Of a stretch of DNA of 64,000 nucleotides, positions 5,995 to 51,832 are shown piece by piece. Both the position numbers and the translations under genes were made by a program. Every line of letters begins with the position of its first letter. Position 1 is the first letter of the stretch. Source of the DNA: Azolla caroliniana (lineage: Eukaryota; Plantae; Polypodiophyta); assembly GCA_043228905.1 (NCBI GenBank), contig JBHGNT010000015.1, forward strand, positions 12,276,001-12,340,000, read 5' to 3'. The notes under the pieces are model-generated. The model saw only the letters and a program-made list of their open reading frames with translations, made no database searches and was not told the origin of the DNA.

Positions 5995-6366
5995 TGTAAA
6001 GAATCAAGAGATAGATTCTTGTGAAGCGGAATAGGTGTGAACTGTGTGTGTGTGTGAGATAGAGATAGAGAGAGACAGAGTATACGCAAGGTTAAATATA
6101 TTAGCAAAGGAGAAAGACTCAACATTTTACAAGGTGGGAGGAGGGTGGTTTATGTAGTCACCCTCTCTCTTCATTAACTACAAGACTCATGGAACATGGG
6201 GAATGTGAAAGCTCATAAGTTATGTGTCATAGAATATGATTCTATGACTCATACTAAATGCTAGAATACAAAGTGGTGACATAATGGTGACTCTTGACCG
6301 TTGGAGTGTCTCTTCACTCTCAAGGTGAGTTCACACACTAGACCAAGTTGAGCTTGATTCTCAACA
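5995..6366 (-). repeat. 5' LTR of A
   Basis: Direct repeat of 168-536; adjacent to PBS. Confidence 0.95.
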
Positions 6367-6371
6367 ATAAT

Positions 6372-12200: not shown

Positions 12201-12512
12201 CACTTCAAACAGAGATGTACAATGGTGAAGGTACAAGGCAACAACCTTGAGCTCACTATCTTCGCCACAGGCGGCGGTAATACACAGAGGCAGCGGCCTC
12301 TTCGTCTCTCTCTCTCTCTCTCTCTCTCTCGGCTGCTCTCTTCAATTGCCTCTAAGTAAAACAGAAAAATATGAGCAACAACATAAAACTGTTTGCCCTA
12401 AGTCATATCTATACACATATGACTTTCGGGCTATTTACAAATATAGCCTCAAGGGCCCTTGGCAAACATATTCACAAATATGTCCCCGCATCCGGATCTC
12501 TCTCCGGGTACA

Positions 12513-12660
12513 TTCGTCATCCGGCTCCGTAACCGGGGTCTTCATCATCCGGCTCCGTAGCCGGGATCTTCATCATCCGGCTCCGTAGCCGGGCTCTTCA
12601 TCATCCGGCTCCGTAGCCGGGGTCTTCATCATCCGGCTCCGTAGCCGGGGTCTTCATCAT
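12513..12660. repeat. 28-bp tandem array in U3 of the J 3' LTR (also at 17309-17456)
   Basis: Five units of TTCATCATCCGGCTCCGTAGCCGGGGTC. Confidence 0.95.
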
Positions 12661-12735
12661 TCGGGTCTTCATTCCCGATTCCCGAACATCCGACCATCCC
12701 ATCCGGAGGGACCGTAATCCCAACAAACTCCCCCT

Positions 12736-15700: not shown

Positions 15701-16809
15701 TTGCATCCGGTTGATGTCTTAAGCCACACGTCTCCTATGCCGGCAATCCGGCATGTACCTTCATTTCCCATCCGGACACAGCCGTGCTCACCGGCTGTGT
15801 AGGATGAGAAGTATTTCTTCTCCGGGGTCAGGTGGAACGACGCTCCGGAATCGACCACCCAGGTCATCTCTTCACCGGCAAGGTTCAGCTCCCTCTCTTC
15901 GGTAATGAGCATTATCTCTTCTTCACTTGCCGCGAGTGCCGTCGTTCCTTTCCGGTCCTGCCCTCGCCGATCCGGACCTCTCCGGTCCGTGGCTCCCCGG
16001 TATGCACCGTTTCGCTCCGGTGACTTCTTCGAATCGGTGTCGTCGGCTCCGTTGTCTTTTCTGTAATGCCGACAATTCTTCCGGAAGTGCCCCGGCTTCC
16101 CACAGTGGAAGCATGTGGGCCTTCCTCTTGACTGCGACCGGGTCCCCGACTTCTCCCGTCTCTGCGGACTCCGGTTCCGTTGTCTTCCCCGTTCCGATTC
16201 GGTAAGCAGTGCCTTCGAGTCGGAGGCCTGTTCTTTATCTCTCCGACGCGCTTCTTCGTTCAAAATACTTGTCTTTACCGTTTGTAGGGACAAGTTATCT
16301 TCGGTGTAGGAGGTGCTGAGAGTCACCACCAAGTTCTCCCAGCTTTCCGGCAATGTACACATCAGGATGATGGCTTGCATTGCATCCTCCAACGGGAACT
16401 TGATTGCCGCAAGCTGGTTCACGAATCCCATGAACGTGCTTACGTGTTCCACCATACTCTCGCCGTCCCGGTACTTGAGGTTCACTATCTTCCTCATCAG
16501 GGAGGTCCGGTTCAGCGCATTCTTCCTCTTGTAGAGGCCCGACAGCTTCCGCCACATCTCATATGCGTTGGTGTCGTTCGCCACGTGTTGTAGAACGCTC
16601 ACGTCGACGTATTGCCGAATGGTTGCAACGGCTTTCCGGTTCAGAAGCCTCCATTCCGTCTCAAGTACCCCCTTGGGTATTTCCGACCTGTCGATCGGTT
16701 CATATAGGTCCCGAACAATGAGCAGATCCTCCATCTTTATCTTCCAGTCGGCGTAGTTCTGCGCATTCAGCACCATCATCCCCGGCTGCCCGCTGCTGCC
16801 GCCTTCCAT
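12736..16809 (-). pseudogene. Element J gag-pol with a single premature stop
   Basis: Colinear with the intact K polyprotein; CGA>TGA at 13267-13269 (KWIL*YLKG versus KWILRYLKG) separates RNase H. Confidence 0.95.
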
Positions 16810-19544
16810 TTTCTGTGTTACCGTCGCTCTGATACCAAATGTTGTAGAACGGTGCTCGGCCACAACCGTGGAATAGGATTAACTCACAGGAAACAGGAAA
16901 TACAAAATGCACGAAGACAATAGAGAGAAGGGTACACTGGATGTTTTACGTGGAAAACCCTAAATGGGAAAAACCACGGGAGTCCTCAAACTCCAACTAG
17001 CACTACAAACAGAGATGTACAATGGTGAAGGTACAAGGCAACAACCTTGAGCTCACTATCTTCGCCACAGGCGGCGGTAATACACAGAGGCAGCGACCTC
17101 TTCGTCTCTCTCTCTCTCTCTCTCTCGGCTGCTCTCTTCAATTGCCTCTAAGTAAAACAGAAAAATATGAGCAACAACATAAAACTGTTTGCCCTAAGTC
17201 ATATATATACACATATGACTTTCGGGCTATTTACAAATATAGCCTCAAGGGCCCTTGGCAAACATATTCACAAATATGTCCCCGCATCCGGATCTCTCTC
17301 CGGGTACATTCGTCATCCGGCTCCGCAGCCGGGGTCTTCATCATCCGGCTCCGTAACCGGGGTCTTCATCATCCGGCTCCGTAGCCGGGATCTTCATCAT
17401 CCGGCTCCGTAGCCGGGGTCTTCATCATCCGGCTCCGTAGCCGGGGTCTTCATCATTCGGGTCTTCATTCCCGATTCCCGGACATCCGACCATCCCATCC
17501 GGAGGGACCGTAATCCCAACACGTTCAGCCAGCCTGTTTAGTTCCGACGTCTTCGGCACGGTGAATTCAAGCCGGATTCCCTTCGACCGATAGTACTCCT
17601 CAAATTGCCCCCGGTATTCTCCTCCATTATATGCTCGAATCACCTTCAGCTTCCGACCGGTTTCTCTTTCGACTCTCACGTGGAGCTCCTTGAAGACAGA
17701 CAACACCTGATCCTTCCTCTTCAATGGTGAGACCCACAGCTTCCGGTTTTGGTCATCTATGAACGTCACGAAGTACTACAATCCGGCATGTGACTTCGTG
17801 TCGACTTGACACATTGGTATGCAATAGTTCTAGTGGTGCATTCTGTTTCATCCGTGGTCTTGACCGGAAGGAGGTTCGATTTTGCTTGCTGGCCAAGCAA
17901 TTGGCGCACTTCTCAAGGTGCACATCTTTCACCTCCAGAATAAGGTTTTCTTCGGCAAGTCTTCTCATCCCCTTCTGGCTCATATGACACAGTCTCTTGT
18001 GCCACAACTCACCGATAGTGTTGGATGCTACGTTCACTTCTTCCCGGCATATTCGGGCATGCATCAGGTACAGTGTGTTGATCTTTCGGGCTCGAGCCAC
18101 GATCAGGCTTCCTTTGTTGAATTTCATGACTCGTGTAGCCTTCATCATCTACCCAACCGGCTGATATTAGGTTCAACTGAACCTTTGGAACGTGTCAGAC
18201 TTCTTTCAATAGTAACTTGCATCCGGTTGATGTCGTCCACAACACATCTCCTATATTGATGATTCGGCAGGTACCTTCATTCCCCATCCGGACACAACCG
18301 TGATCTCCAGCTATGTAGGATGAGAAGCATTTCCGGTCCGGTGTCAAATGGAACGACGCTCCGGAATCGACAACCCACGTTGTCTCATCGCCAACAAGGT
18401 TTAACTCATTCTCCTTGGCAATGAGCATCAGTTCTTCTTCACTTGTCCTGATCGCCGACGTTCCTTTCTGATCCGGACCTCTCTGGTCCGAACTCTTCTT
18501 CGGATCGGTGGTGTCTGCCCCTTTCTCTTTCTGGAAATGCCAACAGTTCTTTTGGAAGTGCCCTAACTTCCCACAGTAGAAGCAAGTAGGCCTCCCCCTT
18601 GAGTTCGACCTCGTCCCCGATTTGTCCCGGTTTTGGGGACTCCGATATCGGCCTCTTCCCCGGTTTTGGTCATCTTCCGTGACCAAGGCCTTCGGATCAG
18701 TTCCGAACTCCCGGTCCTTCTGGCAAGCTTGTTCATCTAACAAGCTTGATTTTACCCTTGCTAGAGACAACTGCTTTCCTTCCGGGCCGGCGTTGCCCAA
18801 AGTGACAACTAGCGTCTCCCAACTATCTGGGAGGGAGCCGAGTAGGAGCAATGCAAGTACCTCGTCGGCTAGAGGTACTTCGAGCGAAGTTGTTTGATTT
18901 ATGAGCCCTTGAAATGCGTTCATGTGCTCCGCCATGTTGGATCCATCATGGTACCGGAATACCGAAACTCGATTTACGATGTTTTTACTCTCCATCATGG
19001 TGCCAAATTTCTCCCAGAGCACATGAGCTTTACTTTCTTCATTGAAGTTGTTGTACAGGCTCATGTCGATGAAGCACCGTATGTATACCGTCGTCTTCAT
19101 GTGCATCACCTCCCATGTCGCAACATCGATCTTATCCGGTTTCTTTTCCCCGAACTATACTGGTAGCTAGAGATCTTTGACCACGAGCATGTCCCTCATC
19201 TTCGACTTCCACACTGGGTAGTTGGAGCCGATGAGCTTGAACATGCTGCCGAATGATTCTTCCATTTCCTTTGTTTGTTTTGATACCAGTTTGTGCGGAA
19301 AAATAGTGCTCGGCCACAACCGAGTCTTAAACAACGAATGGAAGAAAACTAACTAACAACTAGATGACACAGGATGTTTACATGGAAACCCTAAATGGGA
19401 AAAACCGGTTTGCACCGGATCTATCCAGATTCACTTGATCGAGTTTTTGGGTCTCATCCAGAACCCTTCCAGATCTGGTTCCTTCATCCGGCTCGTCTGA
19501 TCCGGCTCCTTCGGTTCTCATCCGGAGGGACCGAATTCCCAACA

Positions 19545-20409: not shown

Positions 20410-21192
20410 TTTCTTGTAGCATCTGCTCAAACATCGTCATCATGTTGCTAGCCTCTTGTTGATTCTCCATCTCCTTACCGCTCGTTTTCACGTCGGGTTC
20501 ACCAAATATGTAGTGCCTTTCAGCAGCGGATCGTTTGCGCGAGTTGGTTGGGAACCATTGGGGTTTTAGACTAGGAGGAGGAGAAGTTTTAAGGCTAATA
20601 AGAATATGAAAGAGAAAGGTAGGAATCTTGTGAATTTCACGAGTATAGTGAATTAGTATAATTAGTATTAAGAATATCAAGAAATCAATCCAAACTTTCA
20701 ATAGATTGGAAGAGAGAGATAGGAAATCGTTAATCCCACGAGTATAATCAATTTAATCAATATTTAGAAAACCCAAAATCCACTACAACCCTTTACAAAT
20801 TGCTCCCCCATCCTTATATAGTGATGGGAGAGTCTAAGTTTATCACATGCAAGCCTCATTCTTTTTTCTAACTCTAGTGTTTATGCACACTACATGTGCA
20901 TGATTAGCTTTCTATCACACCTTTGCATTTAACTCGAGTGTGTATGCATGAATAACTTTTTCTATCATGCTTATCTAGAATATTTACATGGGATAAAGTT
21001 TAGTATAACTTTAAAACTCATAATATGCTAGTACAATGGTAAGGCTTAAAACCTTTAACATGCAGGTACAAGGTTCAAATCCTACCTTGCGCATGTAACA
21101 TAATTATTGTAGTATTTTCTCCTATTTCTTTATACATAATCAATCGGGTACTCCGCACATATTTTACGTAGTGTACAATGTACACTACGACG
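20410..21192 (-). mobile_element. Element F: truncated member of the tRNA-Trp-primed family (5' LTR, PBS, start of gag)
   Basis: LTR 20509-21192 is similar to the H LTRs; PBS at 20487-20504; gag start MENQQEASNMMTMFEQM matches H; fused to the LTR remnant of B. Confidence 0.88.
21022..21094 (+). promoter_or_regulatory. tRNA-like Pol III cassette in the F LTR
   Basis: TAGTACAATGG (21029) and GGTTCAAATCC (21072), same spacing as in H and I. Confidence 0.68.
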
Positions 21193-28621: not shown

Positions 28622-28949
28622 GCTTGTACTATTTAAACCCCACCCATGGGGCATGAAAAGAAGGAGAAATATAGTGCAATTACCCTCAACTTGTGTCTGT
28701 CTCGTCTCTCATTCTCTCTCTGTGTCTCTCTCCCTCTCCCCTCACATTCGAACCCCCCTAGGATCTTGGCTCCACCTCCCACCCATCAACAATATAGTGG
28801 AATATCTGTTCCCGTGGTTTTTCTCTTGTTTTAGGGTTTCCACGTAAAAAGGTGTGTACTATGTATTCACTATTTTCTTGTTTCCGCGCGCATTTTAGCA
28901 TATTTTTCACATATCTACGGTCGCATTTGTCACAAACTGGTATCAGAGA
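28622..28949 (+). mobile_element. Copia 5' LTR fragment plus iMet PBS
   Basis: Contains CCGTGGTTTTTC...AGGGTTTCCACGTAAA and ends ...GTCACA aac TGGTATCAGAG; left boundary uncertain. Confidence 0.7.
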
Positions 28950-29377
28950 ACCTTGATAATGCCTTTGACCTAATCGCTGAATTTCATCACCGATAAGCTG
29001 AATCCCAATTCATGCATAATGACTTGTGGAACCTTCCATTAAAAGACGGGGATGGTGTCATAAGTAGATAAAATCTCAGGAGCTTTAGGGTGACTTGAAC
29101 CCATAACCTATTAAGAGAGAGGAATTAACTTTAGCCATTAGACCCTACAACCTCCCAAAGGGTACCATGACCCTACAAACATCCAAAGAGCACATACAAC
29201 TAGTATATAAATAGAACATATTGTATTGTTAGAACCATTCCGGTTCAACGCTAGTCTTCGGCAAATACTATAGTTCTCGCTCTTCTATATTTTCATCTTA
29301 TAATAAAATATATCCATTTTTCTCTCGTTCTTTTCCGCTCTTGTTCAATTCTCTTTTGTGAAGCTAGGGCCCCAACA
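28950..29377 (+). mobile_element. Chromovirus 3' remnant (chromodomain tail, PPT, 3' LTR 29056-29377)
   Basis: NLDNAFDLIAEFHHR-like tail; PPT AAAAGACGGGGATGG; then TGTCAT...CCAACA containing a TATAAATA. Confidence 0.65.
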
Positions 29378-37242: not shown

Positions 37243-40200
37243 TGTCGGGAATCAGCGCTTGGATTCACCTTCACCTCTTGGCCACAACCGAGTAATCGCG
37301 GATCAATGCAGCAGAAAAATAGGAAATACAGAGAAAGACGCGATACACAGGAATTAGCGTGGAAAACCCTATACGGGAAAAACCACGGGAGTGCGAGACT
37401 CCAAACCAAACTATGCACAGAGAAATATACAATGGCGAGCTGCAAGGCAAACGACCTTGAGCTCGCTGTCCTCGCCACAGGCGGCGGAAATACACAGAGG
37501 CGTCTACCTCTTCGTCTCTCTCGCGCTCTATCTCTCTCTCGGCTGCTCTCACTTCGCTTCCTCTCAGTGAAAACAGAAAATGAGCAACAACATAAAACTG
37601 TTTGCCCTAAGTCATATTTATACACATATGACTTTCGGGCTATTTACAAATATAGCCTCAAGGGCTCTTGGCAAACATATTCACAAATATGTCTCCGCAT
37701 CCGGATCTCTCTCCGGGTACATTCATCATCCGGTTCCGTAACCGGGGTCTTCATCATCCGGTTCCGTAACCGGGGTCTTCATCATCCGGTTCCGTAACCG
37801 GGGTCTTCATCATCCGGTTCCGTAACCGGGGTCTTCATCATCCGGTTCCGTAACCGGGGTCTTCATCATCCGGTTCCGTAACAGCCTCCGGGCTTGCCGT
37901 CATTCATCTCCGGACATCCCATCCGGAGGGACCGAAATCCCAACAAACTCCCCCTTCACTTCGGCATGGGATGTCCCTCCAACCCGATCCTCTTCCGGCA
38001 TGCTTCCAGCTTGTCGGGTGTGAGCACCTTGGTCAGCATATCCGACCCGTTCTCGTCCGTGTGGATCTTCGTCAGCACGAACTCCTTGTCTTCTATCCTT
38101 TCCCGGATCCAGTGATATCTTCGCTGGATGTGTTTCGTCCGGGAGTGATAAGCCGCGTTCTTCGCAAGGTGGATGGCACTCTGACTGTCGCAGTAGAGTC
38201 GGTACTCCTCCTGCTGGATACCGAGCTCTCTAATGAAGTCCTTCATCCATATTATTTCCTTTCCGGCTTCAACAGCTGCCATGTACTCCGCCTCCGTGGT
38301 TGACAACGCAACCGTCTTCTGCAGCCTCGACTGCCACGAAACGGCTCCCCCTGCATAGGTCATCACATACCCTGATGTGGACCGGCTGGTATCTGCATCA
38401 GCCGACATATCCGAATCGGTGAAGCCGTCGAGTTCAGGCTTACCGGAGCCGAATCGGAGGCACACGTTTGCCGTGCCCTTCAGGTATCGGAGTATCCACT
38501 TGACCGCGTTCCAGTGCTCTTTGCCGGGATTGCTCATGTACCGGCTCACCACTCCGACTGCATATCCTATGTCCGGTCTTGTACACACCATTGCGTACAT
38601 CAAGCTTCCGACGGCAGAGGCATATGGTACTTTCATCATGTCCTCCTTCTCAGCCTTTGTCTTGGGGCTTTGCTTGCTGGACAGCTTGCAGTTTGCCGGG
38701 AGGGTTGCCCCGACCGGTCTTGCTTCCGACATGTTGAACCGTTGAAGCACCTTTGTCACGTACTTCTCCTGTGACAGCGACAACTGCTTCTTGCTCCGGT
38801 TCCGGATGATGTGCATCCCTAGTATTTGTCTCGCCGGACCCAAGTCCTTCATTGAGAAGGTTCGGTGAAGAGCCTTCTTCAGCATCCGTATCTTGACCTG
38901 GTCCCGTCCGACGATCAACATGTCGTCCACGTATAGGAGGAGTATTAGAAAGTCTCCTCCTTCGAACTTCTTCACAAACACGCAGTGATCGGACTGCGTT
39001 TTGTGGTACCCTTCGTCGGTCATGAAGGAGTCGAACTTCCGGTACCATTGCCGGGGAGCCTGCTTCAGTCCGTAAAGGCTCTTCTTCAACCGGCATACCA
39101 GGTGCTCCTTCCCTTTCTTCTCGAATCCTTCCGGTTGCTGCATGTAGATCTCTTCGTCGAGGTCACCGTGAAGGAATGCCGTCTTCACGTCCATCTGTTC
39201 TACCTCGAGGTCCATGCTTGCCGCTATGCTCAGCACCGTCCGGATGGAGGTCATCTTCACTACCGGGGCAAATATCTCGTCGAAGTCGACGCCCTTCTTC
39301 TGCTGAAACCCCTTCACCACGATCCTGGCTTTGTATCTCGGGGGGTTTCCGGCATCTCCCGGTTTCAGCTTGAACACCCACTTGTTGCGGAGTGCCCGTT
39401 TTCCTTTCGGCAACTCCACAAGTTCATATGTGTGGTTCTCATGCAGGGAATCCATCTCGTCCTGCATGGCACTCAACCACCTGCGGCTCTGGGTGTCATG
39501 CTTTGCTTCTTCAAAGCTCTCCGGCTCCCCTTCGTCGGTTAGCAGCACGTGCTCTGGTTCCGGAAATCTCCGGGGGGCCCTTCTCTCTCTTAGAGGATAT
39601 CTCCGTTCCGGAGCTTCGGTAACCGGTTCTTCCGATTCTTCTTCATCCGAATCCATTTCGGGATCGGGGCCGGTTCCGGTATCATTTTCATCTTCTTCGG
39701 CCGGTTCTGTTTCTTCACCGTCTTCGGCCGGATCCTCGAGTGCTAACCGGTCCTTTGCCGGTCGGGACTGCTCCTCGTAGAGTTGATCCTCACCGGTCGA
39801 CTTGGAGCTCTTCACCTTCTTCTCCGACTCCCAGTCGGCGAGTGTCTTGTCCTCCATGAAGATGATGTCTCGACTCCTGAATATCTTCTTGTCGACCGGG
39901 TCCCATACTCGGTAGCCGAACTCGTCGTCGCCGTAACCGAGGAATATGCATGGCCGGGTCTTTGGATCTAGCTTTCCTCTCCGGTCCTTTGCCACATGCA
40001 CGTATGCGAGACACCCGAACACCTTCAGATGCCGGTAGGACACTTCCTTACCGGTCCACACTTTCTGCGGCGTGTCTCCGTCCAAAGGTACTGAGGGTGA
40101 TCTATTTATCACATATGTCGCCGTCGACATTGCCTCAGCCCAAAACCCCTTGGGTAATTTCGCATGCGCCAGCATACTCCGGACCCGCTCCATTATAGTC

Positions 40201-42733
40201 CGGTTCATCCTCTCGGCCAGCCCGTTCAGTTCCGGCGTCTTCGGCACAGTAAACTCGAGCCGGATTCCTTTCGAGCGACAGTACTCCTGGAACTGCCCTC
40301 GGTATTCCCCTCCGTTATCCGCTCGTATCGCTTTCAGCTTCTTGCCGGATTCCCTTTCCACTCTCGCGTGGAGTTCTTTGAAGACGCACAACACTTGGTC
40401 CTTTGTCTTCATCGGTGCCGTCCACAGTTTTCGGCTATGATCATCGATGAATGTTACGAAGTACTGGGCTCCGCCATGTGACTTCGTCTCTACCTGACAC
40501 ACGTCAGTGTGCACCAACTCCAATGGTGCGCTACGTCTCGTCGGTGGCCTTGAGTGGAAGGAGGTTCGGTTCTGCTTACCGGCCAGGCAATCGGTGCACT
40601 TCTCCTGGTGCACATGCTTCACTGGGATAAGGTTGTCTTCTGCAAGCCTCTTCATCCCCTTCTCACTCATGTGGCACAGTCTCTTGTGCCACAGCTCATC
40701 GGCAGTGTCGGCTGCCACATTCAGCTCTTCCGGACATAACCGGGCATTCATCAGGTACAGTGTGTTGACTTTCCGGGCCCGAGCCACTATCAGGCTCCCC
40801 TTGCTGAACTTCATTATGCCGTTCCGGATGCTACCTGTGTAGCCTTCATCGTCTAGCCTCCCGGCCGAAATCAGGTTCAATCGAACCTCCGGAACGTGAC
40901 GGACATCCTTCAGCAGCATTTTGCATCCGGTCGGGGTTGTCAACCACACGTCTCCGATGCCGGCAATCCGGCACGTACCTTCATTTCCCATCCGAACACA
41001 GCCATGCTCGCCGGCTGTGTAGGATGAAAAGTATCTTCTCTCCGGGGTCAGGTGGAACGACGCTCCGGAATCGACCACCCAGGTCGTCTCATCGCCGGCA
41101 ATGTTTAGTTCACCTTCTTCGGTGATGAGCATGATCTCCTCTTCACTTGCCGCGAGTGCCGTCGTTCCTTTCCGGTCCTGCCCTCGCCGATCCGGACCTC
41201 TCCGGTCCGTGGCTCCCCGGTATGCACCGTTTCTCTCCGGTGACTTCTTCGAATCCGTGTCGTCGGCTCCGTTGTCCTTTCGGTAATGCCGACAATTCTT
41301 CCGAAAGTGCCCCGGCTTCCCACAGTGGAAGCATGTGGGTCTTCCTCTTGACTGCGACCGGGTCCCCAACTTCTCCCGTCTTTGCGGACTCCGGTTCCAG
41401 TGTCTTCCCCGTTCCGATTCGGTAAGCAGCGCCTTCGAGTCGGAGGCCGGTTCTTTATCTCTCCGACGCGCTTCTTCATTTAGAATACTTGTCTTTACCG
41501 TTTGTAGGGACAAGTTGTCTTCCGTGCAGGAGGTGCTGAGAGTCACCACCAAGTTCTCCCAGCTGTCCGGCAGTGTACACATCAGGATGATGGCTTGCAT
41601 TGCATCCTCCAACGGGAACTTGATCGCCGCAAGCTGATTCACGAATCCCATGAACGTGCTTACGTGTTCCACCATACTCTCGCCGTCCCGGTACTTGAGA
41701 TTCACTATCTTCCTCATCAGGGAGGTCCGGTTCAACGCATTCTTCCTCTCGTAGAGGCCCGACAGCTTCTTCCACATCTCATATGCGTTGGTGTCGTTTG
41801 CCACATGTTGTAGGACGCTCACGTCGACGTATTGTCGGATCGTCGCTACGGCTTTCCGGTTCAGAAGCTTCCATTCCGACTCAAGTACCCCTTTCGGTAT
41901 TTCCGACCTGTCAATCGGTTCGTACAGGTCCCGAACAATCAGAAGGTCCTCCATCTTGATCTTCCAGTCGGCGTAATTTTGTGCATTCAGCACCATCATC
42001 ATCGGCTGCCCGCTGCCGCCGCCTTCCATTTTCTGCAACAGTCGCTCTGATACTAGTTTGTCGGGAATCAGCGCTTGGATTCACCTTCACCTCTTGGCCA
42101 CAACCGAGTAATCGCGGATCAATGCAGCAGAAAAATAGGAAATACAGAGAAAGACGCGATACACAGGAATTAGCGTGGAAAACCCTATACGGGAAAAACC
42201 ACGGGAGTGCGAGACTCCAAACCAAACTATGCACAGAGAAATATACAATGGCGAGCTGCAAGGCAAACGACCTTGAGCTCGCTGTCCTCGCCACAGGCGG
42301 CGGAAATACACAGAGGCGTCTACCTCTTCGTCTCTCTCGCGCTCTATCTCTCTCTCGGCTGCTCTCACTTCGCTTCCTCTCAGTGAAAACAGAAAATGAG
42401 CAACAACATAAAACTGTTTGCCCTAAGTCATATTTATACACATATGACTTTCGGGCTATTTACAAATATAGCCTCAAGGGCTCTTGGCAAACATATTCAC
42501 AAATATGTCTCCGCATCCGGATCTCTCTCCGGGTACATTCATCATCCGGTTCCGTAACCGGGGTCTTCATCATCCGGTTCCGTAACCGGGGTCTTCATCA
42601 TCCGGTTCCGTAACCGGGGTCTTCATCATCCGGTTCCGTAACCGGGGTCTTCATCATCCGGTTCCGTAACAGCCTCCGGGCTTGCCGTCATTCATCTCCG
42701 GACATCCCATCCGGAGGGACCGAAATCCCAACA
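37243..42733 (-). mobile_element. Element K: intact, very young Tork-like copia
   Basis: LTRs 37243-37945 and 42059-42733 appear identical apart from one 28-bp repeat unit; perfect TSD AATTG; PPT at 37946-37960. Confidence 0.98.
37956..42029 (-). CDS. Copia gag-pol polyprotein (~1357 aa, uninterrupted)
   Basis: Single ORF: CFHCGKPGHFRKNC, WVVDSGASFH, integrase HHCC and DDE region (TPELNGLAER), YVDD, RNase H (TKHIQRRYHW). Confidence 0.97.
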   Translation of the reverse strand: MEGGGSGQPMMMVLNAQNYADWKIKMEDLLIVRDLYEPIDRSEIPKGVLESEWKLLNRKAVATIRQYVDVSVLQHVANDTNAYEMWKKLSGLYERKNALNRTSLMRKIVNLKYRDGESMVEHVSTFMGFVNQLAAIKFPLEDAMQAIILMCTLPDSWENLVVTLSTSCTEDNLSLQTVKTSILNEEARRRDKEPASDSKALLTESERGRHWNRSPQRREKLGTRSQSRGRPTCFHCGKPGHFRKNCRHYRKDNGADDTDSKKSPERNGAYRGATDRRGPDRRGQDRKGTTALAASEEEIMLITEEGELNIAGDETTWVVDSGASFHLTPERRYFSSYTAGEHGCVRMGNEGTCRIAGIGDVWLTTPTGCKMLLKDVRHVPEVRLNLISAGRLDDEGYTGSIRNGIMKFSKGSLIVARARKVNTLYLMNARLCPEELNVAADTADELWHKRLCHMSEKGMKRLAEDNLIPVKHVHQEKCTDCLAGKQNRTSFHSRPPTRRSAPLELVHTDVCQVETKSHGGAQYFVTFIDDHSRKLWTAPMKTKDQVLCVFKELHARVERESGKKLKAIRADNGGEYRGQFQEYCRSKGIRLEFTVPKTPELNGLAERMNRTIMERVRSMLAHAKLPKGFWAEAMSTATYVINRSPSVPLDGDTPQKVWTGKEVSYRHLKVFGCLAYVHVAKDRRGKLDPKTRPCIFLGYGDDEFGYRVWDPVDKKIFRSRDIIFMEDKTLADWESEKKVKSSKSTGEDQLYEEQSRPAKDRLALEDPAEDGEETEPAEEDENDTGTGPDPEMDSDEEESEEPVTEAPERRYPLRERRAPRRFPEPEHVLLTDEGEPESFEEAKHDTQSRRWLSAMQDEMDSLHENHTYELVELPKGKRALRNKWVFKLKPGDAGNPPRYKARIVVKGFQQKKGVDFDEIFAPVVKMTSIRTVLSIAASMDLEVEQMDVKTAFLHGDLDEEIYMQQPEGFEKKGKEHLVCRLKKSLYGLKQAPRQWYRKFDSFMTDEGYHKTQSDHCVFVKKFEGGDFLILLLYVDDMLIVGRDQVKIRMLKKALHRTFSMKDLGPARQILGMHIIRNRSKKQLSLSQEKYVTKVLQRFNMSEARPVGATLPANCKLSSKQSPKTKAEKEDMMKVPYASAVGSLMYAMVCTRPDIGYAVGVVSRYMSNPGKEHWNAVKWILRYLKGTANVCLRFGSGKPELDGFTDSDMSADADTSRSTSGYVMTYAGGAVSWQSRLQKTVALSTTEAEYMAAVEAGKEIIWMKDFIRELGIQQEEYRLYCDSQSAIHLAKNAAYHSRTKHIQRRYHWIRERIEDKEFVLTKIHTDENGSDMLTKVLTPDKLEACRKRIGLEGHPMPK

Positions 42734-45700
42734 AATTGGGCCCCCCAAACGGGATGGATTCTAAACATGGATCTCAAACCTAGTTTCTCCCGCCATTTGG
42801 AGGACAGATTCAGTGCATCCATGTGGAAGGCATGGTGTGACATTCGTCGGGGGCTCCAGTGTGATCAACCGAGATCCGAACTTGCCTGGCTCAGTCAACG
42901 TATTCTATGGAACCCATGTCTCAAGGATGAATCTAATCAACTACTGGGATCACGTAAGGGGTTGTCATGGGGATACATTGCAGAAGGTCCAGGCAAAAGT
43001 ATTGAATGTTGGCGACGGTTTATGTCAATGCCACTACAAGATCAAGCGAACATACTCCATGGAATCAAGGGCGGATGGACTATGAGATCGGAAATCATTA
43101 ACGCGTTACTGATTAGGGACTCTGCTATTCAAAGGACGACAATGGAGAAATGGATAGGCCACGAGGAGGAGGGCTCTCTGATCCCGAGAGGTAGGGGATC
43201 ACCAAACACGCTCGAAGGCCATGAAGTGCGAGACACTACGACACCCACACAGAATAATGCCATTCGAGTACTCGCGTACACTGGTCATAAATGGATTGTA
43301 GATCCTGATCCGATCAAAGTACAACCCATTGGCATATATGTACTCATGAAAACACATGGCTGCGTAAGGTCAGTTGGGACCCTTTGCAATGGACATGGCG
43401 TGATCCCTACACGGGACAAGGAAGCAAAGCCATCCCTTTCTTCCAATTCACAACTAGATTGGGTCGCCACATTCTAGCTACTCAAGCCGCCCGAGAACCG
43501 GCTGCTGCGAAGGTCTGGCACACATTTCAAGTTCCCTCCGCAATAATCACCAAGTTTTGGCAGAAAATCTGGAAGCAACAACACGCGAGGCGAATTACCA
43601 CTTTCCAATGGTTGTTAATACATAAGGCCCTACCGGTGGGAGCATGGCAACGTGGGAACCTTAACTCTCTGGATTGTGTAGAGTGCCCACATGCAGTAGA
43701 ATCCATACGACACGCTCTGTGGGACTGCCCAACGTCCCATAGAACATGGCGGGGGGTTGGCCGCTTGTTGCAATTATGCTAGGTGCAAGGTTCAATCAAG
43801 TGGGGAAATATATGTTGGCTATCATGGCAGGCTGCAATTGGCCGATACGAGCATCAGGAGGAGGGGATGACTTTGGTGATAAAAGCACAAGAGGTTCTTT
43901 TCTCCTCCAGCGACAATGTCCACTATTTTCCTCTTAATGACAAATCTCAAGAGGTGTTGGAATTGGTCAGCCCAATAACCCTTTGGATTCTATGGAAACA
44001 ACGATGTAGGCAAGTCTTCTCCAACCAAACCACCGATCCAACAAGGTTACTGCAAGAGATGTGGAGTGAAATTGTAGCCACTCTGAAAAGCCAATATGAT
44101 GGCCTTAAAGGTGGCTCCGAGGGAGTTGAAAGACAACGCATAGCCTTCATCTAACAATGGTCGTCCTCTCCCTTTCTTGAGTCAGTGGGCTTCCACATTA
44201 GATGGAACTATCGCGTCCCTTTTGGGATTTGTACATAATCGCCTCATTTGTAAAATTTTATAACTAATGGAAGGAGTGTTTTTTTGGAAAAAATTTTAAA
44301 AAATTTTAAAAAAAATGACAAGTCTAAAATAAACTTTTTAATGAGGATAGAATAAATGTATTTTATGAATCACACTAGGCATATGCTTTTGGATTTTATA
44401 TACATAGCCCACAATTTGAGTCACCATACATACATTGACTATGACCATTTACAGATATATTGACATTTGACAATTTGTGGATATATAATAGTATGAAGCA
44501 TACGTACCATTCGCGCATTCGCATTCGCATTCGCAAACATTCTTAACATTCGTGTAAGAAAAACACCCTCGAAGTATGGTAAATACCATACTTTTGCACT
44601 CATTATTTATTATAAGGTAAGAATGTTAAGGTAAAAAGTATAAAAAAAAACACAAGTATAAAAGTATGAAAACGAATATTTGGGCTAACGAACACGAATA
44701 TTACGTACTATGCATGATAGGACCATGATCTAAAACTTTGAGAAACAAATTCAATAGGATTTTCATACATGAGCTTTGCAACTAATGTCAAACAAGACTA
44801 ATGTCAAATAAAATATTATAAATTTCAATCATTAAGTAGATAGTAATTTCACATATTCTTGTATATAAATTCTATGTTATCTATTTTGTTTTTCACTAAG
44901 AATTTAGAATTCCCAAACTCACAATATAAAGGTCGTTGAGTCTCACAAAGTGAAACAAGCAAGGTCAAGGTGGAATCTATTGTGGCATTTGTTAGAGATA
45001 TTGATTCCTAATGCAAACGATGAGGGGCCTAGACCATAAATTTGGAAACCATGCATATTTATTACCTAGAAGGGAAGATGATGATTCTAAATCGCGGTGT
45101 AATGGATTCTTCTTGCTAAGATCTTCCCAATGATACTCATATGTTTGGGTTTTCACAGCCTTCTGAGATACATCAATAAAATGTCATTTCTTACAAGGCC
45201 CAAATTTCAATCTAAAATTTGTTTGATGCATATGGGATTCTAGGCAATCTTACCTGAAGCTTAAAAAAAATACTACATTAGTATTAAGAGTCGGCCAAAG
45301 CTTGATCGAACTTCTCGAATATTCCGAAGAGTGGGCCAAAGCTTGTTTTTCTCAATGCGAGAAGGATCAATTTCAACTCCTCGTTCGGTTATGAGATGTC
45401 CTAGATAAGTAATTGATTTCTTGAAGAACTCACATTTTGAGATCTTTGCATAAAACTGTTTGTCACGCAATGTTTGTAAAACAAAGCGGACATGTCTAGC
45501 ATGTTCTTGTAATGTACGGCTATAAACTAAAATATCATCCAAGAAAATAACGACAAATTTTCCAAGTTGTTCTCGGAAAATGTCATTCATTTCTTATTGA
45601 AAAGTAGCCGGAGCATTGGTCAAACCAAAAGGCATAACCAAAAACTCGTAATGGCCATAGCGCGTACGAAATGCCGTTTTAGGAACATCGTCCTCACTTA

Positions 45701-47403
45701 TTCGTATTTGATGGTAGCCAGTACGGAGATCAAGTTTTGTAAAATACCGAGCTCCTTGGAGACGGTCAATTAGATCGTCAGCCCGGGGCAATGGGTATGA
45801 ATTCTTGATCGTCACTTTATTCAAGCGTCGGTAATTAATACACATACGCCATGTGCCCTCTTTCTTTTTAACCAAGAGAACTGGTGCACCCCATGGAGAT
45901 TTACTATAACGTATATAACCCATTCGTAAATAGTCCTTAAGTTGCTTAGATACCTCATCTTCTTCGAATTGACTTAAGCGATACGAAGGTATACTTATTG
46001 GTGCAACATCAGGTACAATATCTATATGATGGTCTATATTACGTTTAGGAGGTAACCCATCAGGTAGTTCACTTGGAAAAACATCATGAAAATCATTTAA
46101 GATTTCATCAAGTTGTTGTTCAAAATATGTTAATTGAACCGGGACATTATCGATATTTTAAATGTGAATGTCCGGATCAAGTACACAATAAAATAATGTA
46201 GAACAAGACAACTCGGATATTGATGGACACGAGGAAACAATCGAGAGGGATTGTTTTTTTACACATTGAATAAAATGCGTACAATCGTTCAGTACAAAAG
46301 AAATGGAATGACGAACTCAATCAATAAATAAAGAAGAGTTTTTATTATAAAACCAGGGATAACCTAGTATTACATCGGTGGTACAAAGATTCATTACATG
46401 GAAGTCTACTTCCTCTATATAAGTATCAATAGAAATTCCTAATGAATGAATCGCCCCGTTGATGTATTGTACTCTTCCATCAGCCAAGTGCACCGTGTAG
46501 GTGTGATCACTTACAGTGGGTTGGATTCCCCATATCTAAACCAAACGATCATTCACAAAATTGTGTGAGCTTCCTGAATCAAATAAAAATTGTACGGGAG
46601 ATCCATTGATATACCCGTTTGCACGTAGTAAATCATTGGGACCCAATACATAGTGAGGGAAAGAACATTGACAATTACTTAAATGATGTGTATAGACCTG
46701 AAGGACATTAGGAATCTGACCTTTATGGTTTGCAGCTTTAGCTTTGTTGTCGTGCTCTTTCCGTTGGAGCTTTCGACATTGATCTTTTGTATGGCCCTTC
46801 TTTTTGCAGAATACGCAAAAAGGATGTTGTCGCTTACAATCGCGATGTCGTGCCTTTCGGCTCCGGATCGTTGCGTGAGTCGGGTGGGAACCGCTGGGGT
46901 TTTGGACTAGGAAGAGGAGAGTTTTAAGGCTAATAAGAATATAAATATGTTGTAAGAAAGAGTTATAGCAAACTCGTGAATCCCACGAGTGTATTGTATT
47001 AGATTAATCAATATGAATATAAGAATATAAACTTCGGTTGAAAGAGAATGATATAGAATTCTCGTGAATCCCACGAGTATAGTTTATTAATTGGTGTTTT
47101 TTAGAAACATATCTAGTTTCCAAATATTTTTCACACACAATTACATTGTGCTCCCCATCCTTATGTAGTGATGAGGAAGTCTTAGTAATCCATGCTTTTT
47201 CTCTAACTATAGACCCCATGCTTTTCCTATAGATAGACTATATGCTTTATCTAAAGTGATCATGCTTTTTTCTAACTTGTGCGTTTCTTATCATGCACGC
47301 TAGATGTGTATGTGTAGCTTTTTCTTTTGTTATGCGTTTTTCTAATGTTTATCCTAGCGTGAATTTACCTTTCTATGTGGGACATCTATGCTTTAACACT
47401 AAT

Positions 47404-47476
47404 GAAATGCTAGTGTAATGGTAAGACATTACATTATTAACATGGAGGTGCAAGGTTCGAATCTTGCCCTATGCAT
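47404..47476 (+). promoter_or_regulatory. tRNA-like Pol III cassette in the H 3' LTR
   Basis: TAGTGTAATGG (47411) and GGTTCGAATCT (47454); TTTT shortly downstream. Confidence 0.68.
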
Positions 47477-47629
47477 GTTCCATTTATTTTGCTATTTTCT
47501 TCTATTTCTTCATTTTTTATTGAATCTAATACTATATACGTTTTTCACGTAGTGTACAAAATACACTACGACACTCACCCCCTCCAAACCCGCACATCCT
47601 CCGGTATGTGCCGAAGTTGTTGGTGTTTG

Positions 47630-49547
47630 TTAGTCTCCTCCTTCATCCTCCGTTTGTCCCACTATGTCAACTTTGTCTCTCCATTTTGAGTAGACCCATT
47701 CTTTCCACCCGAACCATTGTCGCCATCCGATCCACCATATTCTATGTTCGCTTTTTGCATGGCCCGCTTGGTCCTTGTCATCCGCGGTAGTATCTTTTCT
47801 TGCCCTCTTTCTTTTCTTCATCAATCTCGACTTCTTTTCGGATTTTCGGTTTAGTCGGATTAGCTTACTTCCGATTCGGTCTCGTCGGATCGTCTTTCGT
47901 TTAGTTCGGCTTCCTTTTCGATTTGTATTCGGTCGATCCGGACTCGGTTGATCGGTTTTTACCGATTCAGTGCTCTTTCGGGTCGGTTTCTTTTCTTTTC
48001 TTTTCGTCCGGATTTGCTTTCTTTTCTTCGTTTTCACCTGCCTTGTCCGGTTCGACTTTCGGCACTTCTTTCCGTTGTTCGCCACGTAGGTCCTCCGATA
48101 TGTGCTCGTTGTTCGGTCCTCGTGTGGTTGTAATGCATGCTTCTTTTCTCGCCGTAGCGCGTGCTTCTTTATTCGCCATAACACGCGTTTCTTTATTCGC
48201 CGTAGAGCGTGCTCTGTATTACGCGCTTCTCCCGTCGTAGACCCGACCTCCGCATTGTCGCACTTTCTTTTAGATTGGAATTTCGGATGGATCATTTTCC
48301 ATCCGAACCGACTTCCGACTTTACCTTCCTCGCCGCCATCTCCCGTCTCTCCGGTCTCACGTTGGTTCTCGGACACAACCGCCGAAGTCTCTAGATATTG
48401 TTGGCATGAATCCTCGGTATTACCTTCTTTCGTAGTTTCACCCTTAGCATTCTTCTCGGCTATCTCTTCATCGTATTCGTCGGCTTCGACATTCGTTTTC
48501 TCTCCGCCACCTTCCGTCTCTTCGGTCTCACGTTGCCTTTCGATCGCAACCGCCGGAGTCTCTGGAATCAGTGGTGGGGAAGTCTCGATATGGCAATCCG
48601 CCATTGATTCGTCCATAGCCACCTCCGATTCGATTTCGTCTTTTGTGGCTACCTCCTTAATCACATCCGCTTCACACTCTTTATCTGCATCAATTATGCA
48701 AACATCTATTATGCTTACCCCTTTTTGACCCGATGTCTCGGGCACTTGTATCCCGAAATTTCCTTCTACACTTGAATTATCGGCCTTATCCTTCGCCATC
48801 GTTCTTTCACAAGACGAGTAGGTGTCTTGTTCCACTCTTTCTCCCGTGGTACCATCATGTTGTATTTCGGCCTTCATATTGGCTTCATCGTTTTTCCTCA
48901 ATCGACCATCCTTCATGGGCCATGTCGTTGTTGACGAGATTCTCAGCTTCCTTTCATCATGTCTTCGGCATACCCTTTCGACTTTAGCCCAATCCTCGGT
49001 AAGGCCGTTCGCACTGTCATCATCTTCGAGTTCGATCCCAATGTCCATCCTTTCTTTCCGATCGATCGATCTTACGAACTTTAAGACTTTATCTTCTCCC
49101 ACCAATCTTCGTTCCCGCTCCGAGAGTCGAGCAAAACGATGCTCGAACTCTAGGAACGCTTGCGTTGCACTTCGGTGAGTCTTCTCCGACGCCACCCATT
49201 CGTCGATCTCGTCCCGTCCATCTCTCATAGTCATATGCCTCCCGTAAAGCTTCTTCAAAGGACTCCCATGTCGAGTTTTGTTGTTGTATCTTGTGGATTC
49301 TCTCTTGTAGTTCGTCCGAGGCCACCCGACTAAAGGATATCACTTGCAATCCTTCCGGTATCCGATATTGCATCATCTCCGCCTTATATTCACGTAGGTA
49401 GCGTGACACACCCTTACCGTTGAATTCCCCGTTTCGTCGCAGAAGCCGCTCTACTGCCGCCTTCATCTCCGACATCGCACGTTGTTCTTGTTGCATCCGC
49501 TCAAACATTATCATCATCATGTTCATCGCCTCTTGTTGATTCTCCAT
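47630..49547 (-). CDS. Element H gag-like protein with acidic and basic low-complexity extension (frameshift near 49230)
   Basis: ORF 49089-49568 (FNGKGVSRYLREYKAEM...WESFEEAL) overlaps the 542-aa ORF 47630-49258. Confidence 0.7.
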
Positions 49548-49563
49548 CTCCTTGCCACCCGTC

Positions 49564-49581
49564 TTCACGTCGGGTTCACCA
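49564..49581 (-). promoter_or_regulatory. PBS complementary to tRNA-Trp (identical copy at 20487-20504)
   Basis: The plus strand reads TTCACGTCGGGTTCACCA, matching my recollection of the 3' 18 nt of plant cytosolic tRNA-Trp(CCA); 4 nt from the LTR. Confidence 0.85.
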
Positions 49582-50143
49582 ACTGTGTCGTGCCTTTCGG
49601 CTCCGGATCGTTGCGTGAGTCGGGTGGGAACCGCTGGGGTTTTGGACTAGGAAGAGGAGAGTTTTAAGGCTAATAAGAATATAAATATGTTGTAAGAAAG
49701 AGTTATAGCAAACTCGTGAATCCCACGAGTGTATTGTATTAGATTAATCAATATGAATATAAGAATATAAACTTCGGTTGAAAGAGAATGATATAGAATT
49801 CTCGTGAATCCCACGAGTATAGTTTATTAATTGGTGTTTTTTAGAAACATATCTAGTTTCCAAATATTTTTCACACACAATTACATTGTGCTCCCCATCC
49901 TTATGTAGTGATGAGGAAGTCTTAGTAATCCATGCTTTTTCTCTAACTATAGACCCCATGCTTTTCCTATAGATAGACTATATGCTTTATCTAAAGTGAT
50001 CATGCTTTTTTCTAACTTGTGCGTTTTTTATCATGCACGCTAGATGTGTATGTGTAGCTTTTTCTTTTGTTATGCGTTTTTCTAATGTTTATCCTAGCGT
50101 GAATTTACCTTTCTATGTGGGACATCTATGCTTTAACACTAAT

Positions 50144-50216
50144 GAAATGCTAGTGTAATGGTAAGACATTACATTATTAACATGGAGGTGCAAGGTTCGA
50201 ATCTTGCCCTATGCAT
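50144..50216 (+). promoter_or_regulatory. tRNA-like Pol III cassette in the H 5' LTR
   Basis: Identical to 47404-47476. Confidence 0.68.
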
Positions 50217-50724
50217 GTTCCATTTATTTTGCTATTTTCTTCTATTTCTTCATTTTTTATTGAATCTAATACTATATACGTTTTTCACGTAGTGTACAAA
50301 ATACACTACGACAGCGATCCAGGAATTCGTTGGGTGTCTTGCGTTTCCCAACAAATTGCGACTGCTTAGTCCCGGGCGCTTCGTTGGGTTTGTTATGGTC
50401 CTTCTTTGAAGTGCGTTAATAGCAAAGAACTATTTCAACGGCCTCTTCGAAGGATTTTGGATCCTTATCGTGCACTATTCAGTGATAGTCCGAATTGGGG
50501 TGCCATTGACAAAACAAGCTATCAACCAATTGTCCCCTTCTAGACCCGATTTTTGGATTTGGGTTCTAGCATGGTGAACATAGTCTTCTAGCGAGGAAAA
50601 TTTCCTGTTAGAGAGGTTCATTAAAGCTTGTGCTGCCTCGGTTCGAGAGGGAGGTTGCAGAAATTGGCCCTTAAAAACCATGACAAAATTTGTCCAGGTA
50701 TCGGGGAATTTCCCCATAGTACGG

Positions 50725-51832
50725 TGTCGTGAAGATCCGTCACTACGCGCGGATCGTGAGGCGGAACCGCCGGGGTTCTGGACCGGAAGGATTCAAAGTC
50801 GGTACAAGCTTTGGCGCAAGCTTTGGCGAGAAAGTACTTAAGATAGATTGGGAAAGAGAGAAGTTGAGATTAAACGATTGAGAGAGATTGATTGAACTTT
50901 TATCTTTGGATTTAAGAAACAAGTTACACGATCAATTTGATAACGAATTTCTTCTTCTTAATTTCATAACAAAAAAAAACACGTTTTTTCTCCTCCTTCA
51001 TTCTTTTATAAATGCTCTCATGCGTATGATGTATGTGAGGGTACAAGACATGCATAAAATGCATGTTTGCCATTTGGCCCTTATGTATTACATGTGGTGC
51101 ATGATAACCATGTCACTCATTTTAGCTCTCATGTATGAGAATTTACATGTAAAAGTACAATGATAGAAATATAAATTCAACTAAATGGCATGGCTTAATG
51201 GTAAGCCAATTGACTCCTAACTCGGAGGTGCAAGGTTCGAATCCTTACTTGCACACCTTGTATATATGTATATATATTTATATATTTATTTATCTAGTCA
51301 CCGGACGCCGGTTCGCCGGATGCCGTCAGTTACCGGTGCCTCGCCGGATGTTGTCACCTTTTCGTCGCCGGATACCGGTGCCGCTGCCGGATGCCGTCAC
51401 CTCACCGGCATCGGATGTCGTCGGTTACCGGTGCCTCGTCGGTCCGGTTTTGGGCTCCATCGTCGGTCCGATTTTGGTTGGCCAAAACCCTTTACGAGTA
51501 GCTAGCCCACCTCCACTCTTAGTTCAAGTTACCTTGAACTCTCTATGCTCCACACATAGACACAAAGATAATAGGTTTTGCTCTACCTTATATATGATGA
51601 GAGCCGTATTTGTCGTGCCTATGTGGGATATCTCACAATTTTCTCTTTTCCTTTCACAAACTTTATACCCTCATATCTTGACATTTAGTTGTCCGTTTCT
51701 CGTGTAATAAAGTGCATTCGAAACCTCCATCATTTGTACTTAGATATTAAATTTATTTAAAATTTTATCTTCACAATTATTGTATTATGTGATTCATACT
51801 CGATTTTGTACGTTTTATGGGATTTTCACAGA
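50725..51832 (-). mobile_element. Solo LTR I, a diverged relative of the H/F LTRs
   Basis: Starts TGTCGTG; shares GGATCG..GGAACCGC.GGGGTT.TGGAC; 4-bp TSD ACGG; removing it rejoins the N gag (WRGLR|TMGKFPDTW). Confidence 0.85.
51184..51256 (+). promoter_or_regulatory. tRNA-like Pol III cassette in solo LTR I
   Basis: A-box TGGCTTAATGG (51191); D-stem GCTT/AAGC; B-box GGTTCGAATCC (51234) with T-stem; acceptor and anticodon stems do not pair. Confidence 0.75.

Follow-up and report, generated by a model that had tools for sequence, protein, structure and literature searches.

In a 64-kb stretch of the genome of Azolla caroliniana (assembly GCA_043228905.1, contig JBHGNT010000015.1, positions 12,276,001 to 12,340,000 of the forward strand; hereafter the window, numbered from its first letter) we encountered retrotransposons of the Ty3/gypsy type whose long terminal repeats (LTRs) carry a tRNA-like cassette, consisting of an A box followed by TAAG and, at a fixed distance, a B box. 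This cassette is a real and inherited part of the LTR, located antisense to the element in the U3 region, and it is not a tRNA gene. We favour the interpretation that it is the remnant of a type-2 RNA polymerase III (Pol III) promoter that has been kept as an outward-facing site for TFIIIC and Pol III, to which we would assign a probability of roughly one half. The cassette is predicted to be under selection, probably as a protein-docking site, and we infer both the binding of TFIIIC/Pol III and any effect on expression of the element.

A preliminary description of this DNA had reported the A box, TAAG and B box in four LTRs, termed F, H (the two LTRs of one element) and I, with a constant spacing between the boxes, and both observations were borne out. 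A search with the pattern AATGGTAAG-N(20-45)-GGTTCRAATC returned four matches in the window, all on the plus strand (at 21035, 47417, 50157 and 51197), against an expectation of zero, as none of the 100 dinucleotide shuffles used as background contained a match. The distance from the first base of the A box (21029, 47411, 50151 and 51191) to the TTC of the B box is exactly 45 nt in all four copies. In the 3' LTR of element H the cassette occupies 47411..47475 on the plus strand, antisense to H, with the A box TAGTGTAATGG, then TAAG, and the B box GGTTCGAATC; the same module, detected both by the pattern and by an nhmmer profile of the cassette, is present at 50151..50215 (plus strand) in the 5' LTR. 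The copies in LTR I (51191..51254, plus strand; A box TGGCTTAATGG, B box GGTTCGAATCC) and LTR F (21029..21093, plus strand; A box TAGTACAATGG, B box GGTTCAAATCC) match the profile with E values of 6.5e-18 and 2.3e-14, and the 3' LTR of H is matched at 47409-47475 with E=2.8e-16. Across the whole window the profile detects these four copies and nothing else. The sequence signature of a type-2 Pol III promoter (TRGYNNARTGG and GGTTCRANNCC, 30-60 nt apart on one strand) is found in all four, and also in 11/11 copies that were sampled independently of the cassette.

A looser scan of the window for A and B boxes gave no additional copy in an LTR; beyond the four cassettes it matched a single variant, which occupies 29080-29150 of the minus strand. 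Here the boxes (GGTCTAATGG ... GGGTTCAAGTC) are 43 nt apart and lie ~130-200 nt downstream of an initiator-Met-type primer-binding site (PBS), TGGTATCAGAGA (28936-28948, plus strand), that belongs to an element on the plus strand. This stretch is also antisense, but is located in the leader rather than in U3, and the cassette profile does not detect it.

The cassette-bearing elements of the window run on the minus strand, as judged from their PBS (49564-49581 in H and 20487-20504 in F) and from the polypurine tract (PPT) of H (47574-47585); the plus-strand cassettes are therefore antisense and in U3, in agreement with the orientation proposed in the preliminary description. When LTRs were compared in pairs (blastn, word size 7), six pairings of distant groups (H-I, H-L005, H-L001c, F-I, F-L001c and I-L005, with E values down to 1e-12; numbers preceded by L denote contigs from other assemblies, introduced below) had no part of U3 that could be aligned apart from the cassette. 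Outside U3, some distant pairs share just a match of 19-21 nt. The alignment of H with I, for instance, is limited to the cassette (81% identity over 48 nt) and a U5 motif of 21 nt. F and H are alignable at both LTR ends with ~73% identity. LTR I is itself chimeric: in its outer U3 it is similar to an L001 LTR that has no cassette, and further in, over the portion that extends from the cassette as far as the TATA region, to a cassette-bearing LTR of the same locus; the module therefore also spreads by recombination.

This mobility could be taken as a sign that the cassette is a passive relic, a fragment of a tRNA or of a short interspersed nuclear element (SINE) that hitch-hikes in the LTR, with an apparent conservation due to recent ancestry, LTR recombination or repeated insertion of one SINE family. 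Many LTRs in Repbase contain tRNA-like pieces, according to Kojima (PMC10886601), and a SINE-like relative with an A tail occurs in other plant contigs (L105 and L107), both of which would suit such an origin. We nevertheless consider a passive relic very unlikely, as the cassette retains 74-83% identity between distant groups, in a register free of insertions and deletions, and the flanks on both sides have diverged beyond alignment; moreover, the boxes are better kept than the stretch between them, the cassette has no tail or target-site duplication (TSD) of its own, and its position and orientation are constant across LTR groups. A nested tRNA-derived SINE, an alternative raised in the preliminary description, was likewise rejected: in addition to the missing TSD and tail, the cassette is found at the identical position in both LTRs of H, of L003 and of L005, is common to several LTR groups, and is present in 11 of 14 related LTR lineages.

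These lineages comprise the three window LTRs together with LTRs in contigs ascertained through gag. Homologues of the open reading frame (ORF) of H were retrieved from public assemblies, from which 12 encoding contigs were fetched (loci labelled L001 etc.). The ORF represents the gag of a Ty3/gypsy lineage, as shown by L001, which encodes a pol with RVT_1, RT_RNaseH, Integrase_H2C2 and rve domains. The 11 lineages with a cassette are F, H, I, L001 (LTR at 9450-10270), L003, L005, L006, L007, L129, L130 and L132. For an unbiased view of conservation we used 11 copies that had been found via the window or via the gag protein and not via the cassette. The distance from TGG to GGTTC is 35 nt in 11/11 of these copies, and the frequency of the majority base rises from 0.57 in the upstream flank and 0.68 in the inter-box stretch to 0.78 in the A box, 0.89 in GGAGGT, 0.90 in the B box and 0.95 in TAAG. 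The boxes and their spacing are thus retained while the surrounding LTR diverges, as the preliminary description had maintained, and the alignment places the boxes above the flanks (0.78-0.90 versus 0.57), contrary to the refuting case that it had named. The variable positions of the A box, 12 and 13, are ones at which the Pol III consensus prescribes no base. The conserved set comprises T8, R9, Y11, A14, R15, T16, G18 and G19 of the A box, with TAAG, and GGTTCRA..C of the B box, preceded by GGAGGT.

More copies were obtained by scanning metagenomes with a pattern spanning both boxes, which gave 120 loci. About 100 of them, from independent public assemblies, have the exact spacing of the family, and these collapse to 63 representatives at <90% identity. 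Among 24 pattern-found representatives, positions outside the search pattern are also well kept (A14 and A58 ~90%, C61 ~80%). The orientation of the cassette could be compared with that of gag or pol on the same contig in 48 comparisons, in which a single contig may count in more than one class, and was antisense in 46 (25/25 relative to homologues of the H ORF, 15/15 relative to the gag of L001 and 6/8 relative to pol); the sense orientation in the other two may be due to nested insertions. In 22 copies the B box is followed by the LTR edge and the PPT at a distance of 109-266 nt, and the cassette of LTR I lies ~580 nt from the outer LTR edge; the LTRs of the family measure 580-1100 bp. LTRs with a cassette flank pol-encoding elements (L065, L068 and L120) and gag-only elements alike.

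Several of the fetched loci display further arrangements of tRNA-like sequence. In L001 (1-10615) an LTR, an autonomous gypsy element, a second LTR, a gag-only element, a third LTR and the next PBS follow in tandem, and neighbours share LTRs; the LTR at 6166-7322 contains GC-rich tandem repeats and no cassette, and the following LTR at 9450-10270 has one. A second and weaker tRNA-like stretch, TTCATTGGTAA ... GGGTTCAAATC, in sense orientation and downstream of the TATA box of the same LTR, occurs on the plus strand in L001 (10061-10126) and L003 (404-469), with an nhmmer E value of 0.095. The A-box half AATGGTAAGGTTGAGGT is tandemly duplicated in an H-like LTR of L007 (2191-2214, minus strand), and in L059 (171-937) ARAGORN calls tRNA genes for Val-TAC, Ser-TGA and Leu-TAG within 800 nt on a contig that has a cassette-bearing LTR at ~2042. 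Pattern matches with no retroelement protein nearby were seen in contigs of other metagenomes (L013, L019, L023, L056 and L090, and the SINE-like L105, L107, L110 and L124), and these were left out of family membership. Such box modules include one group with a perfect 6-bp D stem (TAATCC/GGATTA) and another of short, SINE-like sequences ending in an A run, and they may be related to the LTR cassette or have given rise to it. Scans of viral contigs with a 20-mer from the cassette and with the U5 motif gave no match.

Tests for an encoded tRNA, which the preliminary description had suggested as a check, called none. ARAGORN found no tRNA in the window and none among ~100 cassettes of the fetched loci, and the Rfam tRNA model gave no match at the gathering score in the window, nor at E<=10 on the window copies and six well-preserved relatives. 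In permissive mode one related Rfam match was obtained (16 bits, minus strand 51188-51254) to Plastid-ycf2, a model that we take to be the antisense of the plastid trnI-CAU, and the match was regarded as generic tRNA-likeness. The I copy had been likened to tRNA-Arg(CCT). A D stem of 5 bp (GGCTT/AAGCC) is indeed present in its cassette, and the anticodon position reads CCT, but the anticodon and acceptor stems are unpaired; copies of the I type, with CCT or CTT at the anticodon position, presumably resemble Arg-type tRNAs, and we claim no isotype for them.

RNAalifold gave 0 consensus pairs on either strand, and in a cloverleaf drawn by hand 57.1% of cells were paired, as compared with 56.1% for shuffled sequences. 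Pairing predominates in the T stem alone (81% of cells), where no compensatory changes were seen; the D, anticodon and acceptor stems pair at shuffle level with no excess of compensatory changes, and a brute-force search over column pairs for covariation yielded noise only. In the absence of a conserved fold and of covariation, the constraint must act on primary sequence and register, which argues against a functional tRNA-like RNA and favours a site that acts at the DNA level or that pairs in trans with a conserved partner. A structured RNA made by Pol III, such as a tRNA mimic or a functional small RNA, would account for the T-arm hairpin seen in most copies and for the T runs enriched downstream, but given the negative results with ARAGORN and the Rfam model, the lack of consensus pairs and the shuffle-level pairing of the other three stems, we regard this explanation as largely refuted and highly improbable.

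Three other ideas were considered and set aside. An impression of covariation in the D stem (GGCTT/AAGCC in I, TAGTGT/ACATTA in H and TAATCC/GGATTA in L013) was rejected since the pairing registers differ. Dimerisation through kissing loops formed by a palindromic T loop (TTCGAA) was discarded, as most subfamilies have the non-palindromic TTCAAA. Finally, an origin by read-through of the primer tRNA in plus-strand synthesis was rejected, as the resulting copy would be adjacent to the PBS and not in U3.

The T run noted in the preliminary description beyond the cassettes of F and H was confirmed, with TTTT 39 nt (F) and ~28 nt (H) past GGTTC, and LTR I has no T4 run nearby. Of 62 non-redundant copies, 63% have T4 in the 60 nt downstream of GGTTC and 76% in the 100 nt downstream, as compared with 23% and 29% for A4, which served as control, although base composition (33% T) accounts for part of this enrichment. 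The signal is suggestive of a terminator, but is not universal.

In the scenario that we propose, the cassette is the decayed copy of a tRNA, or of the head of a tRNA-derived SINE, that would have been incorporated in the U3 region of an ancestor of this Ty3/gypsy clade. It would since have been passed on as part of the LTR, with recombination carrying it from one LTR lineage to another. Selection would retain the DNA sequence of a type-2 Pol III promoter, that is, the A box with TAAG and the B box with GGAGGT in a fixed 35-nt register. TFIIIC would bind the B and A boxes in the outer part of U3, possibly followed by TFIIIB and Pol III, in a unit directed outward, away from the TATA-driven Pol II unit of the LTR itself, ~120-250 nt further in. 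The outcome may be a barrier at the promoter edge that is bound by protein and free of nucleosomes, or a short transcript made outward by Pol III that ends at a nearby T run. The putative TATA box of H is located at 49899..49908 (TACATAAGG on the minus strand), as read from the sequence. Matching sites are found on the minus strand in the other H LTR (47159-47168), in F (20812-20821) and in I (51004-51012). The block is kept between F and H in the LTR alignment, and the distance from cassette to putative TATA box in the window LTRs is 179-243 nt.

A module of tRNA ancestry at this position may instead serve Pol II, as a cis-regulatory element of U3 (an enhancer or another protein site) that operates without Pol III factors. 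We think this rather unlikely. The constraint on primary sequence with no fold, the conservation of GGAGGT and TAAG to the same degree as the boxes, the fixed 35-nt spacing, which exceeds the requirement of TFIIIC, and a location 120-250 nt upstream of TATA, a typical enhancer position, are all compatible with it. On the other hand, conservation is highest at precisely the positions by which the A and B boxes are defined (T8, R9, Y11, A14, G18 and G19; G52-A58 and C61), with the free positions 12 and 13 varying, and the downstream enrichment of T runs would be left without a role.

A number of observations weigh against an outward-facing TFIIIC/Pol III site. Three of the 14 LTR lineages, namely L001 6166-7322 (which follows the autonomous element), L002 and L004, lack the cassette and have an identical PBS and PPT, and it is therefore not essential for transposition. 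Around a quarter of lineages have no terminator-like T run within 100 nt. TFIIIC tolerates variable distances between A and B boxes, so that the strict 35 nt is more than the model needs, and GGAGGT, which is conserved like the boxes, lies outside the known Pol III promoter. The ~100 pattern-found copies cannot alone measure conservation of the boxes, as part of both was fixed by the search. The 5-kb stretch containing H and LTR I is matched by sequences from DNA runs of several plant samples and from leaf and plant metagenomes, with ~16,000-17,000 assembled contigs per run in two plant organisms; these matches are to assembled contigs only, which show neither strand nor ends, and none of the matching runs is on record as RNA, although contigs of one run that may be RNA cover LTR I.

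Pairing in trans is the basis of a further explanation, in which the cassette acts at the RNA level. The genomic RNA carries the complement of tRNA D and T arms near its 3' end, and could bind a host tRNA, as the bipartite PBS of yeast Ty3 does, or else be targeted by tRNA fragments. Yeast Ty3 belongs to the same superfamily, and its U3 pairs with two arms of the primer tRNA, T-psi-C and D, which on DNA amounts to an antisense partial tRNA in U3 (PMC5371799). Such a role would explain the near-universal antisense orientation, the confinement of conservation to the regions of the D loop and T loop and the missing internal covariation, and a single primer is used by all members: the 18-nt PBS, TGGTGAACCCGACGTGAA, is identical wherever the 5' junction of an element can be read (28 sites in the fetched loci) and is the exact complement of TTCACGTCGGGTTCACCA. 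Under the name 'miR894' the latter has been published as a small RNA abundant in plants, and in Cryptomeria it was reported to match gypsy elements (PMC5846777). It has the appearance of a 3' fragment of the primer tRNA, and our literature search on the PBS sequence led to this small RNA only and to no named tRNA.

The bipartite 5'-3' PBS of yeast Ty3 is reportedly the work of Gabus et al. (1998). The short U3 boxes of Ty3 match the primer tRNA, whereas in the present family the T stem of the deduced primer is mismatched and a full tRNA register with both boxes is kept. The invariant PBS implies CACGT as the 3' strand of the primer T stem, in place of which the cassette has CCTTG or CTTGC, and the comparable region (T loop and 3' strand of the T stem) shares no more than ~6-7 contiguous bases, GTTCGA. 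In view of these discrepancies, and of the three cassette-less lineages that have the same PBS, we regard a function at the RNA level as distinctly unlikely. The region of the purine tract is also conserved in most elements, over ~30 nt (ATACCGGWGGATGTGCRGGTTTGGWGGGGGTG; window 47574-47605 on the minus strand, L001 6132-6163 and L005 3688-3719), far beyond the usual PPT. The hexamer CGGGTT is common to this region and to the acceptor 3' strand of the primer tRNA.

The window as a whole is a nest of LTR retrotransposons. The carriers of the cassette have the features of Ty3/gypsy elements, with TG..CA LTRs, a tRNA PBS, a PPT and the gag-pol order protease, reverse transcriptase, RNase H and integrase. 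Element H (46846..50313, minus strand) is a complete, non-autonomous, gag-only derivative of 3468 bp, flanked by GCGA on both sides, with LTRs of 728 bp each (46846-47573 and 49586-50313) that are 99.9% identical. Its coding capacity is restricted to a gag-like ORF of 542 aa, homologous to the gag of L001, which spans 47630-49258 and 49089-49568 (minus strand) with a frameshift. LTR F (20509..21192, minus strand) is the 5' LTR of a truncated H-like element, with a PBS identical to that of H. LTR I (50725..51832, minus strand; U5 end at 50725) is probably a solo LTR. It is flanked by ACGG on both sides and contains a GC-rich stretch of ~440 nt (51290-51740) between the cassette and the outer edge of U3. 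Joints in assembled contigs link I-type LTRs to an H-like PBS, and I therefore belongs to the H lineage. Both H and I are inserted into a host gypsy element, G (minus strand), of which 45270..46845 encodes protease (DSGS) and reverse transcriptase motifs in the ORF translations; its gag, recognised by a gag motif, continues at 50314-50724 and from 51833 to ~52300, and the host gag reading frame runs on across the insertion of I.

Elsewhere in the window there are two Ty1/copia elements (12040-17540 and 37243-42770) with ORFs of 1198 aa and 1360 aa. The longer ORF encodes gag, protease, integrase and RVT_2, and the shorter one is truncated at its C-terminal end, where it runs into a frameshift. 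The LTRs of these copia elements contain arrays of a 28-bp tandem repeat (e.g. 12485-12766 and 37694-38003). A non-LTR retrotransposon is represented by a fragment, an ORF encoding a zf-RVT domain, at 43384-43782 between a copia element and the host gypsy element.

The closest known systems are Helenus, Cassandra and Ajax (TRIMp3; Kojima 2024, PMC10886601), LTR elements with Pol III promoters derived from small RNAs in their LTRs. Helenus resembles the present family in having an inherited, tRNA-derived sequence in the LTR with conserved A and B boxes, in elements that are non-autonomous and encode no functional tRNA, and its proposed origin is likewise the insertion of a tRNA-derived SINE into an LTR (PMC10886601). 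Helenus elements are 311-1263 bp in length with LTRs of up to ~323 bp and no ORF, and the only plant case is in Selaginella (PMC10886601). H, in contrast, is outside this miniature, non-coding class (less than ~1.3 kb) in its length and gag-like ORF, and its relatives encode pol; the cassettes of the family occupy the outer U3 half, and their LTRs measure 580-1100 bp and have a putative TATA box of their own. The tRNA-like part of Helenus is taken as the element's own Pol III promoter, whereas the cassette described here is antisense and belongs to gypsy elements of 3.5 kb that encode gag, or to relatives that encode pol, and therefore cannot drive the genomic RNA. Cassandra, which is also present in ferns, is a miniature element with a sense-oriented promoter of the 5S type (type 1), shown to yield the element's transcript with a conserved terminator, as distinct from the tRNA-type, antisense promoter sequence in coding elements found here. 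Ajax is similarly a miniature element whose promoter, also of the 5S type, is in sense orientation.

At the DNA level a different comparison may be drawn. In yeast and mammals tRNA genes and extra-TFIIIC (ETC) sites, which have a B box, act as chromatin barriers, and SINEs with a B box act as insulators; we know of no plant example of such sites. As in these cases, the boxes of the cassette may dock protein regardless of the encoded RNA, but barrier tRNA genes, ETC sites and SINEs are host loci or free SINE copies and not built-in modules in the U3 of an LTR retrotransposon. Our full-text literature searches found no description of an antisense tRNA-like cassette in the U3 of coding gypsy LTRs. 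The analogy with Cassandra drawn in the preliminary description is therefore not new in kind, since LTR elements bearing tRNA sequence are known from Helenus (PMC10886601); novelty is limited to the antisense position of the cassette in protein-coding elements whose long LTRs have a putative TATA box.

LTR retrotransposons account for the bulk of large plant genomes, and little is understood of the ways in which their promoters evade or postpone silencing. It is possible, though we would put it somewhat below an even chance, that a whole plant clade of protein-coding Ty3/gypsy elements possesses a working outward TFIIIC/Pol III unit, for example as a barrier or a source of antisense RNA, or a variant in which U3 docks a tRNA. 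Cassettes of this kind mimic tRNAs or the heads of SINEs, and may confuse the annotation of repeats and small RNAs. If the proposed function is correct, this would be the first built-in TFIIIC/Pol III module outside miniature elements, and would extend the idea embodied by Cassandra and Helenus from miniature parasites to their protein-coding relatives. Two transcription systems would then be joined in one mobile element, with a Pol III/TFIIIC module inside a Pol II promoter region, and very many B-box sites would be scattered through the genome, where they could serve as boundary or architectural elements.

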